Source: Calcarisporiella thermophila CBS 279.70
Taxonomy: Eukaryota; Fungi; Calcarisporiellomycota
DNA: 64,000 bases
Direction: 5' to 3'
Assembly: GCF_041956535.1 (NCBI RefSeq)
Contig: NW_027192199.1
Coordinates: 62,001-126,000, forward strand
Position 1 is the first letter of the stretch. Each line of letters starts with the position of its first letter. The notes below the pieces were generated by a model that worked only from the letters and a program-made list of their open reading frames with translations, was not told the DNA's origin and made no database searches. Below, piece by piece: positions 57,093-63,317 of this stretch. The translations under genes and the position numbers were made by a program.

Positions 57093-57921
57093 AGTTGTTT
57101 TTCCCTTCTATTGATGATAAGTGAGGGAAATGAAATAGATTATTTCTATAGTTAAAAAGTAAGCTGACGCGTTCAAGGTCGCTTGAATTTGAAATTTGTT
57201 GAGGGCAATTTCTATATTTGAATCCAAACGAGAAATCAATTAGTAACTCAGTGTTTTAATACTTAGACTTCGTAGAGGAATAATAGGAAATACCATTAAG
57301 TCTCCACACAAGGACATCGCAATGGGATCAGCTAGCTTTAATAAATACTAAAATGAAGTCCACGTCTATTTCAGCACCTGAAACTTATGTATGTAGTGGA
57401 TATTAATGCAAAGTATTTTCTTTATCTTCGAATTTTCGAATGTAAATTAGATTGCAAGTTTATCTGAGTAGAACTGAGTATATATGTAATATTACGATGT
57501 TTTTATTTGTATATCCCCAAAGATTACGATTAAAGCCAAAGATATATGCTACTCTGCATAAACTGAAGATCTTTAAAAAAGAGCACTCTGCGTAGTCACA
57601 AAATTTAAAGTTCACCAGGAATGAGAAAGCTTTTATTTTTATTTATTGAGTGACAGAGAGAAGAAATGTGGGGCCTAAATCAAACAGAAATATTTTGTTA
57701 TAAGAAATGCATAAAAATAAACAAAATAACGTTTTCACCTATAAATATAACCTGCTTCGGTCATCATTTGTGACGTGGCAGTTACAAATAAAATAGATCA
57801 GAAATGAATATAAGGTCACTAAATAAAAGAATGCTAGCACAGCAATGCCAAATAATGATAAGCATAAATAACAAGCGGATTGTAGGAAAATAAATTAGAT
57901 CCAATAGCGGGGCTCGCGAGT

Positions 57922-60900
57922 TTATATGAAGTCAAATGTTTTTTCTCCTATCACATACACCTGGTCTGTTTCCTGCAGAATCGTGCGGCGGGTCGGATTG
58001 CAATAGACATATGATGATAAGTGCTGCTTGTGTACTGCGCGGCGGTAGAGCCCCAGTGGCACAGTATTGTATTCACGGAGCAATGCGGTAAAGAGAGTTG
58101 CATACGTAGCTCCGACGTAGCGAGGCGAAATCTTAATCATGAAAAGATGGCCATGTTGCAGTGCGTCAACTTTGTCATTGTTAAAAGAGCCAGAAAGGGT
58201 TTCAGGCACATGGCTGAAAACGAGTTGTTCAACTTCGAATAAAAAGCGTTTGTTTCCCATTTAGAGGGACTATTGATATACTGAAAGAAATTGAGCGGAA
58301 GCTTACCAATAGAGAGCATATGCCGGTTGTAGTAGCTATTACCGAAATAAAGTCAGTTTAATTCTGAGAGCTTAAACGACAGTTGGTCTAATTACCATTG
58401 GCAAATCAGTGTGTCCAACATTGTCTTTGAATACACATTGCCGGACATGAAAGAAGGACGAACCATAGCTTGCGCGTTCACATCTGATGTCTGAATTGTG
58501 TCACTCTCTCCTACGAGCTTGAACGAGTCACGATGGATGCATTCCACCACCATGAAAAAGTCGTCATCTTCCTCGGAACGCAATGCTTCAACATTAAGAG
58601 CGGTAAGTAGCGCAGAGGAATCAGCAGTACGGAGTGAAGCACTATAGAGGAAATACACTAATAAGATTTCTGGATTTTAAGAAAAGTTCAAAGGTTGCCC
58701 AAACACCGACCTTCCGTATTGCTTGGAATTTGCCAGAACGATACACTTCTTCGCGTGTTGGACTCCGGCTCTATATAGATCTTTTCGCACCATTGGACTT
58801 CCTTTTACCAAGAATACACCGCCAAACTTCTGAAGCCGGATCGACAGCTCATCGGGCGGAGACGCCGGGCAAAGGATCACAACTGGCATATCAGGGTCTC
58901 TTGCACGCTTCGCTCTGACACATCCTATTAAAATATCAATGGAGCTGTGGAACGAGGGGCTAGGGTCACAGATCAACAAGTGGTTCTTCACCCCGTCCAC
59001 ACAGGGTAGATCGAGTAATTTAGCAGCATTTTTAGCATCTCGTAAATTCTGTGCCTGCACTGCCTTTCCGGTAAGTTGAGGGTCGAGCAATTTTTCGGAA
59101 GCAGGAGTGGCCGGCCTAGTGAGGGAGAGTTTCGAACCAGAATCAGAGCCCACGTCTATCTCCTCTTCGTCCGACAAGTTCGGTCGAAAGATCAAGCCGG
59201 ATTTTTGTGTAGGCGTATTTTGGGGAACCTCGGAACTGTCTTCCAATTCCGCAGTAGAGTCTGACGAGAGAGGAACAGAAGTTTTTGTTGACCCGTAGGA
59301 GATATTCATCCCAGCCGTCAAGGAACTTGGCCCTGATTCTTGCATTTCACTTTCCACACGCACGCTCTCCAATAGAGAATCCGTCTCTAGAGGGTCGTCA
59401 CGTTGGCTGTCCAGGGATACTATTCTTGCAGCCGTCTCTGCACAATCCGATATCACAAATCCAACTTCTTCACCCTCAATCACATAGTTTGACGGGTTAA
59501 TGTATACCGAGAATCCTGATCCTGTGGTAGCAAGCTTCGGGTTGGATTTGTGGTAGAGCCCAATTGCGAAGAGGGTTGCTCCAAAATGCATATAGATGAT
59601 CTCAGCAGAGGCGGCGAAAGTGAGGCCGGTAAAGCGCTCCGAAAAACTTATTGGATATATCTCCATTGAGGCTCCATTCACATACTCTTCAGCCCAGGCC
59701 AGATCTGGGCGGCACTTTATACCGTCTTGCAGGTCTTGTCGTGTCTCATCGGTAATTGAGGTGGTGAGCAGCAGAACTAGCGAAGAAAATCCCGGAATAA
59801 GCACGGATTGTGATAATAAGCCCATGTTCAGTTCGTTCAGGCATACAACATCTTTCGCTAGTTTAAAAAGAATTATTCCATTAGCCTCTTTAACACTTTC
59901 TTCATATACGGGACGTCAGAAGATACAAAAATAAAAAAAAGAAGATCCTTTACCCAGGAAGTCAAAGTGCGGCACATTTTCAGGAAGATGTACTTGCGCA
60001 TAGAGTTTTAGATGGCGATTGAACTTTTTCATGGCTAGCGCACGCATCACCTGCTCTGCGTCCTCATCGCGAGCATCTTCCTCTTCTATAAACTTGGATG
60101 CTACAAAAATGCGGCTTTAGCGCTGTGTGCCTTGACCTTCTCCAAACTACGGAACGAGGTGGCAGAGCCCTTCACATAGTGGACACGCGTACAGTAGGCG
60201 GGATCCTGTAGTAGCAGGCCGAGTTCTTCTGAGGGCTCGTTCGAGTTCAGAATCACGACTTGCGTGTTCACCGTGCTAAGCCCGTGATCGGTGGAGAAGA
60301 ATTCACGCAGCCAATAAATTAGACTTTGAATGTCAATCGGGCCACCAATCAGAATGTGCGATTTCCCTTTTTGAGGTTTAAAAGAGTGCTCATATTTGGA
60401 TTTGCGAGAGATAAGATTTAGAAGCTCGCTAAGGTTAGTAGGGATAAAGATAGCCCCGCAAATCTAAAAATAGAGTGTTATTATGGGTCGAGATCACTGT
60501 TGACGATCATTATCTCCCAGACCGGAGATCTAAGTTAAAAAATCAAAAACTATAGACGTACCATCACATACAAGATGACCATGCGATTAAATGAATTGTC
60601 AGGCATAATGTTCGTCGACATACCGGTGGTGCTCGACACAGTCGTGAAGAAAAAGGCATCATAGAACGAGATGACTTTATCCGTTTTCGATTGCTTGTAT
60701 GTAACAATATGTACCAAACTCGTTACGGTGAGCAGCGTGAACAGAATAGCCAAACCTAGCTGCAAGCCTTTGCGCATGATAAGTGAGAGATAGAAGAGAC
60801 CATTCTGCACTGGAGCCAGGCAGTTGCGAAAGGATGAATGGAGACGCATGAACCGAAAAGGATATATGTAGACGATATATCCCGCAGACATGTATGTATG

Positions 60901-61645
60901 CTACAAATGAATTGATACCTCTATAGTTAACTCATACTCCAACCGGAAAGACAGAGGATCTACCTCGAGAAGCTCATCGAGCAACCACATGTCACGGAAA
61001 AAAGTCGAGAGAACAAAAGCAACCATCACGGGAACAGTCGATAATAAAGTGATTAGAGAAAAATATGAAAACAGTGTATAAAGTGGGTCTGGCGCGATAT
61101 AAATGCGAGGAAGGTATTGAAGTAACAACATTGTGGCCAATGTCACCTCTACAATTTTATTTGGAAGAGGCAATGGTTGTGGTTTACCATCGGTACGCAC
61201 ATAACGTGTATTCTAAGTGAATATATGGCATCAGTAATGTCACAAAAAAGTTTTTAAAGTCTAATTGCAATCTTACGTAGATGTAAGTAATAACGAAGAG
61301 GAGATTTAATAAAGCATCTAGAAGCTCCCAGATGCGCCCGCCCTACAATAGCAAAAAGCATCTAGTACTATACATACTGAATTATCATCTACAAGGAGAA
61401 TCAACCTTTGACGTGTCAACCCAAAATGCCCAACGCTGCCTTCTGCTCGCATGATCATCTCCATATCCGTGTTTTAATGCTAGCGTCTTCTGCCACACAG
61501 TATCGGCCTTCCTTAGACCTTCGTTCCTCTCTTCCAGGATGTGACGGCTATCTTGATCACTTTCCATCCTCCCCATGCGAACACGCTGCTTCAAAATCAT
61601 TTTGGGAACATTGGTGGTCCTTAATGCTAGTTGATTTTTCCGCAT
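57922..61645 (-). CDS. Slo/BK-family-like ion channel (6 TM + two RCK domains) with a non-canonical pore; apparent 1-nt frameshift near 60105
   Basis: S1-S6 helices, S4-like PFRFMRL, pore helix FYDAFFF, RCK1 (HILIGG, LREFFSTDHG, YVKGS, CLNELNMGLLSQSVLIPGFSSLV, EYVNGASMEIY), and RCK2 (NHLLIC, VKGSP...DLYRAGV, SFMSGNVY, PLGLYR, YVYCNP). Confidence 0.85.
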
Positions 61646-61919
61646 TTTGATTTTTTTCGCATTGAAGAGGATGAAAATGGTGGAGGTGGGTGTTAGAAGC
61701 TAAACTTAATGAACACGAGAAATAAATCATACTCCGAAATTAACGAGGCTTTTTTAGGTAAGTAACCTACATTTTGAATTGCATATTGAGCTCTCAATTT
61801 ATGGCCAAGGATTGTATAGTTAAAGGTAAAATTGATATTGAACAATTACATGCAAACTGGAAAATAGGAAAAAGGTGGAAGTAGTGGATTTAAAGAGAGA
61901 GGATTAAAGTTATAAATAT

Positions 61920-63317
61920 TCAGAAATCCTTTAACCATTGCTGAAAGTATTCACAGTTTGCGGGTGAAACTGGGCCGTTTGGAGTACAGAAAGAGTATAC
62001 CTGGAAAGCATTGTTAGTCAAATGAGTTCTAAACAGTGGATATTCATGCTCACTTACTGGGCATTTTCCGCATGGAGTTTCTGTCCACGCATCGCCCTCG
62101 AATTTCATCTTCACTGATCGATACATCCACTCGACTTGTCCTTCATCGTCATCATCGCCCCAATCTGCAGGATCATAGACAGGAGTAACCTTTTCTATTT
62201 TTCCGTCATATATGAGCGTGTCGAGGAGAGCTGTTATGTCCTCGAGAGACAACTCTACAGAAGATATACGGCTCTCGGTAATAAAACGCCGGACTTGCGT
62301 TGCGGTCGGAAAATGCACATAATTGGCTGGGTAAACGGCATTTTCAGCACGTGGAGGATAGCTCTAACAAGGAGCTAAGAGTATTAGCATACTAATGAAG
62401 CGAGGAGAAGAGTAGATGGATTATAATTACTCTTGACTGGATATATTTGAAGCAAGCCTTTTGAAGATTCTCAATGAAATCCACATCTAGCTCTTGATCC
62501 GTGTACCATGTTCCACCTGTTACCTCTGTCGAAGGCGTCAATTCGTAAAGCATATAGACCTTTCGTGTCGGATTCTAAACATGATGTATGCACACTCGCT
62601 CAGAAAAAGATCGCTTACACGACTATATCAAGTGTAATTGTTAAATTACCTTTACTGATTTGACCGATTTGACCAACTGCTTTTGCTCTAATGTCTTCAA
62701 GCATCGCATTACTACTTGTTGATGAAGTCCTGTCTTTGTTTTTAGAGTCCTTGTCCAAATTCCCTCATTGCCCGAAGCCTTGATGTGCTGGTAGACCAGT
62801 TTCTCTTCCCCTTCTAGTTGCGAGAATCTAGTATTGGCAAAAATGAATTATAAATTCAGCATACACAAAAAATGATCGTTAAGACACTTACTTTCCAGCA
62901 TCCTCCGCCTTCACAGCACGATAATAATTTGTTTTTCCATCTGCGGCAATATCTAATAGCCCCTAATTTATTCCATTGGAATTAAGTATCAGGTGAATGC
63001 AGGGATATCGAAACGAATATATGTCCGCCTACCTTTCTTGACAAGCTGTTGATGCAAAAAATAATACTCTCAATCGACAGGTTAATAGTCTTGAAATCCT
63101 CATCCGTGAGCCCCTACAAAATTTGGTAGCCAGTATGGCAAAGGCAATATTAAATGTAAATACAAACATAATAGCTCATTCAGTTTGTCCCTAATTCCTT
63201 AGAGAAAACAAGAGCAAATCGGGCACTCACCTTAGGTGTATTTAACGCTGCCTCATAAAATATCTTCTCATTTTCGTTCAATCCCGCCGGTAACTCATGC
63301 TTTCTCGAGTTCTCCAT
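61920..63317 (-). CDS. RPC34: RNA polymerase III subunit RPC34/RPC6 (POLR3F), multi-exon
   Basis: GNEGIWTRTLK, VKNPTRKVYMLYELTPSTEVTGGTWYTDQELD, LLDTLIYDGKIE, and C-terminal PCGKCPV..FC...SPANC. Confidence 0.93.

Follow-up and report, generated by a model that had tools for sequence, protein, structure and literature searches.

To our knowledge, every Slo channel that has been studied is a K+ channel built on the TVGYG signature. A tetrameric channel that joins an RCK ring to a pore lacking TVGYG has been described outside this family in CASTOR, which is Ca2+-selective (PMC6697748). The channel described here is encoded on the minus strand of a 64,000-nucleotide (nt) stretch of contig NW_027192199.1 from the fungus Calcarisporiella thermophila (hereafter the window), where the public protein P0115, 'uncharacterized protein VTP21DRAFT_11406 [Calcarisporiella thermophila]', maps exactly. 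It has the architecture of a Slo channel and an unusual pore loop, T-T-G-M-S-T-N. Sequence comparisons indicate that this odd pore is kept under strong purifying selection in an old fungal branch of the family and is not private decay; ion conduction through it is therefore probably unlike that of the Slo channels studied so far. Literature searches found no paper describing this non-GYG fungal Slo clade: fungal Slo2-like genes are mentioned in passing in a preprint on Marchantia SLO, the non-GYG clade is not (10.1101/2021.06.01.446568), and a cation-channel survey of pathogenic fungi, with BK as a query, reported no Slo homologue. A whole old branch of the Slo channels, including members from the amphibian pathogen Batrachochytrium and from arbuscular mycorrhizal fungi, has swapped TVGYG for another, equally conserved signature. 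The branch offers a natural experiment in which a K+ pore was converted to another function with the RCK gating machinery retained, and brings together uncharacterised channels from fungi, organisms in which little is known of electrical and Ca2+ signalling.

The pore loop lies at 60595-60669 on the minus strand, where translation returns SFYDAFFFTTVSSTTGMSTNIMPDN, just as an earlier note on this DNA had read it; TVGYGD, which is replaced here, is invariant in 19 of the 19 canonical Slo sequences used. In a gapless register, T-T-G-M-S-T-N is laid on T-T-V-G-Y-G-D with the Gly over Val, as given by a profile match to KvAP, by MAFFT alignment with canonical Slo1 and by the model, in which the pore helix stops at T287. 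A gapped register introduces a single deletion upstream and a single insertion downstream; there T-T-G falls on T-V-G, Met on Tyr and Ser on the second Gly, as given by phmmer alignment to BK structures and by hhalign of two family profiles (probability 98.2%, E 6e-14). Because intermediate sequences from Ambispora, Quaeritorhiza and Sycon keep T-V-G-Y in the canonical register, with one extra residue before the Asp, we lean modestly towards the gapped register. The earlier note's statement that none of GYG survives holds for the gapless register and fails for the gapped one, in which the first Gly is retained. Under either alignment, the two residues that build the outer K+ sites, Tyr and the second Gly, are gone. 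A different exon supplying a GYG filter, which that note had raised as a way its reading could fall, is ruled out across 57800-61800: no alternative G[YFL]G pore exon occurs among the exon-like stretches, and the sole GYG is a chance GYGD (window 61459-61468, minus strand) in the polar cytosolic N-terminus (LKHGYGDDHASRR), which is not a pore.

Relatives were collected by scoring the pore exon against 1.84 billion representative proteins. This returned 97 relatives, 62 of them at <=1e-10, and nearly all carried the same type of loop. The clade consensus reads F-x-D-A-F-F-F-T-x-V-S-S-T-S-G-L-S-T-(D/N/Q)-I-V-P-D-x-x-F-(S/T)-R, with a signature of V-S-S-T-(S/T)-G-(L/M)-S-T-(D/N)-I-V-P-D in its pore loop, and the window sequence fits nearly every position. 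Among 87 distinct pore strings, the Gly is retained in 77, the Pro in 73, the Asp in 77 and the Arg in 75. All named relatives without TVGYGD are fungal and span five phyla: Chytridiomycota (Batrachochytrium, Entophlyctis, Phlyctochytrium, Quaeritorhiza), Blastocladiomycota (Allomyces, Sorochytrium, Paraphysoderma, Catenaria), Zoopagomycota (Dimargaris, Tieghemiomyces, Dispira, Spiromyces, Smittium, Zancudomyces, Massospora, Entomophthora and others), Mucoromycota (Umbelopsis, Calcarisporiella and several Glomeromycotina) and basal Ascomycota (Saitoella, Dipodascopsis). The one named non-fungal match is a protein of the sponge Sycon, with TVGYVDD. Full-length members have a common architecture, Ion_trans_2 is passed only by the TVGYLSD variant, and public annotation calls all of them either hypothetical or 'BK alpha subunit domain-containing'. 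The suspicion in the earlier note of a poorly described fungal channel class is supported, and the homologues from early-diverging fungi that it called for share the non-canonical filter and are under strong purifying selection.

The loop varies further within the clade. In the Dimargaritales (Dimargaris, Tieghemiomyces; P0055, P0064, P0065, P0070) there are 3-4 clade paralogues with loop variants such as SITAGPADSVVPD and CITVGPNDNVVPD, and some Kickxellales loops diverge still further. The Umbelopsis ramanniana orthologue (L013:1719-1754) carries its filter on a 37-nt micro-exon, VSSVSSIRTDIV, that has no Gly and has an Arg, and it is under strong purifying selection.

A maximum likelihood tree of 53 rows (IQ-TREE quick search, unrooted) splits a 34-row clade from all canonical TVGYGD channels with a support of 99 in the SH-like approximate likelihood ratio test (SH-aLRT). 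The canonical side holds animal Slo1 and KCNT, a red alga, an oomycete and the canonical fungal copies, the last of which group with KCNT2 (99). The 34-row clade holds the sponge sequence, a small group with TVGYLSD, TVGYRSD or SYENS, and a 30-row clade of the TSGLST type (95). Within this 53-row tree the C. thermophila gene falls inside neither the Slo1 nor the Slo2 groups; it groups with Glomeromycotina (92; 86 in another tree) and then with Umbelopsis and basal Ascomycota (96-97), a placement consistent with the taxonomy of the species. Branching inside the 30-row clade follows the fungal phyla and therefore points to vertical descent from early fungi, with caution on the deepest nodes, where the outgroup branches are long. 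The Sycon ciliatum protein (P0088, 'KCNT1-like', TVGYVDDVLP) stands at the base of the non-canonical clade and shares with it a one-residue insertion after GY; its placement hints that the lineage may predate the fungi, though the Sycon branch is long.

The C. thermophila genome holds a second BK_channel_a gene, P0260 (L003, G000:C9:455001-465000), with TISTVGYGDYAP and TVGYGD, which is one of the canonical fungal copies in the tree and groups with 'KCNT-like' channels of Mucorales, Mortierella and chytrids. The locus of this Slo2-like gene lies ~340 kb from the channel gene on the same contig. The non-canonical channel gene itself is single-copy in the genome.

Selection was measured in two pairs of orthologues as the ratio of nonsynonymous to synonymous divergence (dN/dS). 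For two intronless Dimargaris orthologues it is 0.035/0.50 (0.07) overall, and over the 115 codons of S4-S6 dN = 0 with dS = 0.55. For the Umbelopsis pair it is 0.013/0.276 (0.047) overall and 0.0035/0.176 (0.02) over S4-S6, despite a VSSVSSIRTD loop. Across 47 full-length members, the pore helix and the filter loop are the most conserved segments, with a mean frequency of the commonest residue of 0.64 and 0.59, respectively, compared to 0.44 overall.

Full-length analyses used the channel proper, P0115:316-1349 (start ATG at 61645), which is short of 23 RCK1 residues; the exons were searched as they stand in the genome. The introns measure 63-98 nt and have GT..AG ends in the P0115 exon map, a 65-nt segment at 60086-60150 being treated separately. 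The features of the gene, with helices numbered as in an AlphaFold2 (AF2) model built from the family alignment, are as follows.

57922-61645, minus strand: whole channel gene, ~10 exons, ATG at 61645-61643 and stop at 57924-57922 (open reading frame list, frame translations, exact mapping of P0115)
60900-60562, minus strand: pore exon (S4, S5, pore and start of S6), in an open piece spanning 60900-60553
60820-60882, minus strand: S4 helix YIYPFRFMRLHSSFR, two Arg three residues apart (AF2 helices 203-223)
60691-60783, minus strand: S5 helix (AF2 helix 236-266)
60628-60666, minus strand: pore helix FYDAFFFTTVSST, the most conserved segment of the family (AF2 helix 275-287)
60595-60627, minus strand: filter loop TGMSTNIMPDN, Gly codon at 60622-60624, Pro-Asp at 60598-60603 (translation)
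60404-60594, minus strand: S6 helix, split by a 98-nt intron at 60464-60561 (AF2 helices 299-315 and 318-329; exon map)
60000-60367, minus strand: RCK1 (Slo-like_RCK, Pfam), profile contiguous across the frameshift
60105-60109, minus strand: T5 run at which the RCK1 frame shifts by one base, stop TAG at 60103-60101 (sequence)
60086-60150, minus strand: 65-nt GT..AG 'intron' of P0115 (P0115 mapping; alignment to 10 homologues)
59562-59855, minus strand: BK_channel_a (Pfam, 4.2e-21, 75.5 bits)
58398-58988, minus strand: RCK2, the second Slo-like_RCK, running over one intron (Pfam, 1.3e-16; exon map)
57949-58113, minus strand: Slowpoke_C (TrkA_C-like), end of the gating ring (Pfam, 1.7e-6)

The earlier note had described the pore helix, S6 and both RCK domains around the odd filter as well preserved, and the exon map and Pfam agree. 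RCK1 was matched in two pieces, 60463-60104 (profile 2-83, 3.4e-14) and 60116-59919 (profile 82-118, 0.004), the second of which is under the family cut-off yet contiguous with the first in the profile. The pore exon has no Ion_trans_2 match in Pfam even at E<=1. The model (mean predicted local distance difference test score, pLDDT, 78.8; predicted template modelling score, pTM, 0.78) contains S1-S6, the pore helix and the gating ring, and all of its best 50 Foldseek matches are Slo1 or Slo2.2, the top ones full-length, so that both the voltage-sensor-like S1-S4 with S5-P-S6 and, from Pfam and phmmer, the tandem RCK1-RCK2 gating ring with BK_channel_a are in place. The nearest solved proteins by sequence are Drosophila, Aplysia and human Slo1 (phmmer, 5.6e-35 to ~1e-28), followed by Slo3 and Slo2, and the matches include crystal structures of the BK gating ring. 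In S4, P14 and R19 of the exon are nearly invariant among 48 relatives. A four-copy complex prediction of the pore domain (P0115:545-648) scored 0.01, which speaks neither for nor against tetramerisation.

Compared to Slo1/BK (KCNMA1, Drosophila slowpoke, Aplysia Slo1), which supply the best matches in sequence and fold, the C. thermophila channel is alike in its S1-S6 core, S4 Arg at i and i+3, tandem RCK ring, BK_channel_a and Slowpoke_C. It differs in lacking TVGYGD, in its position on the opposite side of the 99-supported split, in the lack of an S0 helix in the model, where no transmembrane helix lies N-terminal to S1 and residues 44-70 are polar, and in the Ca2+ bowl, where the region aligned by phmmer, ESDTIQTSDVNAQ, lacks the acidic run. 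The Asp equivalent to BK D367 in RCK1 is apparently conserved, by our own reading of the alignments. The Slo2-like (KCNT-like) channels, including P0260 of the same genome and contig, have the same set of domains; unlike the gene described here, P0260 and its relatives in Mucorales, chytrids and Mortierella have retained TISTVGYGD, match Ion_trans_2 and cluster with animal KCNT2.

Taken as a whole, the reading that we slightly favour over all others together is that the C. thermophila gene is an intact member of this old Slo branch and encodes a cation channel with relaxed or non-K+ selectivity. Each subunit has six transmembrane helices but no S0; its S4 bears two conserved Arg, and a single pore loop is followed by the tandem RCK1-RCK2 ring. 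Four such subunits would assemble around a pore that an intracellular ligand gates via the RCK ring, and the two S4 Arg may lend it some voltage dependence. The filter would be shortened and hydroxyl-rich, with one Gly and the basal hydroxyl residues kept and the Tyr and second Gly of K+ sites S1 and S2 lost. By analogy with the pores of NaK, CNG, Trk/Ktr/HKT and CASTOR, the selectivity of such a filter is most likely relaxed or non-K+, and the channel is predicted to conduct cations non-selectively or to be Ca2+-permeable. NaK, CNG and HCN channels and Trk/Ktr/HKT transporters have pores of the K+-channel fold that keep only the lower part of the filter (T-x-G), an analogy for which no sequence-level relationship was detected.

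Several points weigh against this reading. Motif analogy is the sole basis for the assigned selectivity. The filter register differs between methods, with phmmer and hhalign on one side and the KvAP profile, AF2 and MAFFT on the other, and the filter is modelled at a pLDDT of 60-76. Some members have no Gly or have a loop Arg (Umbelopsis VSSVSSIRTD, Dipodascopsis GTVTGIRSTD), which is odd for a cation filter. Lastly, the frameshift in RCK1, if real, may leave this copy with a damaged gating ring.

A broader proposal, which we hold tentatively and with somewhat less than even confidence, is that the clade as a whole represents kingdom-wide RCK-gated Ca2+ or non-selective cation channels, a fungal counterpart of CASTOR/DMI1 that would have arisen independently within Slo. 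If true, chytrids, zoopagomycetes, arbuscular mycorrhizal fungi and a few basal ascomycetes would possess a ligand-gated route for cations or Ca2+ that has so far gone unrecognised. The CASTOR/POLLUX/DMI1 channels of plant nuclei also have an RCK gating ring and no TVGYG, but their filter is ADS(A)GNHA and their transmembrane architecture differs from the Slo type. Membership of the C. thermophila protein in that family is rejected on its different motif, on a Castor_Poll_mid score of 20.4 bits (below the cut-off of 26.7), and on the lack of any CASTOR chain among the solved-structure matches (phmmer, E<=0.01).

The alternative that survives best, though it is unlikely, is that the channel is still K+-selective through a filter with one glycine, as in Trk/Ktr/HKT transporters, where the P-loop has the pattern T-x-G-(L/F)-(S/T/N). 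Both hhalign and phmmer place T-(S/T)-G on T-V-G, and the TVGY(L/R/V)(S/D)D intermediates of Ambispora, Quaeritorhiza and the sponge are in line with such a filter. A K+ pathway might also be needed, as a six-frame search of the 28-Mb genome returned no match to TrkH (PF02386), where fungi usually possess TRK transporters; but this search may have low sensitivity to intron-split genes and is not taken as absence. The pore exon, however, matches neither TrkH nor Ion_trans_2 in Pfam, leaving a resemblance at the level of the motif, a canonical K+-type Slo is already present in the genome together with other Ion_trans_2 genes, and members of the clade without the Gly are equally constrained. Trk/Ktr/HKT membership as such is rejected: those proteins carry four M1-P-M2 repeats in one chain, and the channel here has a single pore loop per chain and no Pfam TrkH match.

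It is improbable that this copy is a recent pseudogene or crippled allele, with RCK1 truncated by a genuine T5 frameshift or deprived of 23 residues by splicing of the 65-nt segment. The frameshift is real in the assembly, which has a single copy of the gene, and it is the sole hint that this copy may be damaged; the 65-nt segment is bounded by GT..AG and is as long as an ordinary intron of this gene. Against this, the segment at 60086-60150 still codes for RSLEKVKAHSAKAAF and, after the one-base shift, for VASKFIE, a stretch that is present in 10 of the 10 homologues compared and is otherwise free of defects, and its excision deletes 23 conserved residues of RCK1. All other exons are open with canonical splice sites, and the gene is conserved like its orthologues, on a branch of 0.5-0.59 compared to a median of 0.59-0.74. 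An intron cannot be fitted at the T5 run itself, and the 65-nt intron was probably introduced in annotation to get past the frameshift. Given that all homologues conserve the skipped residues and that the remainder of the gene is open, the frameshift is most likely a homopolymer error in the assembly rather than a very recent mutation; the 116-contig assembly may, by our own estimate, derive from long reads, for which homopolymer indels are plausible.

Slightly less probable again is that the protein is a non-conducting or modulatory subunit that co-assembles with the canonical paralogue P0260, in the way of silent Kv subunits. The co-occurrence of both Slo types in Calcarisporiella, Batrachochytrium and Catenaria, the missing K+ signature and the loop Arg of some members would suit such a role. 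However, conservation in the protein peaks at the pore helix and filter, and S4-S6 of the Dimargaris pair has no nonsynonymous change, which would be unexpected for a dead pore, and the canonical and non-canonical clades are very distant. Zoopagomycota, Glomeromycotina and Ascomycota carry 1-4 non-canonical copies each, but the lists of canonical sequences name none of these groups, which is weak evidence given that the searches were word-limited. Simple decay, in which the orthologues would all carry TVGYGD and this copy would evolve under relaxed selection, had been named in the earlier note as an outcome to look for and is ruled out by a non-canonical motif common to the relatives and by purifying selection.

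It should be noted that the public model of the gene contains two errors. In addition to the removal of the 65 nt (60086-60150) as an intron, P0115 runs from the upstream RPC34 gene into the channel across a 301-nt intron (62000-61700). RPC34 and the channel are two separate genes, and the fusion (window 61700-63317, minus strand) drops the C-terminus of RPC34, whose open reading frame ends at 61920.

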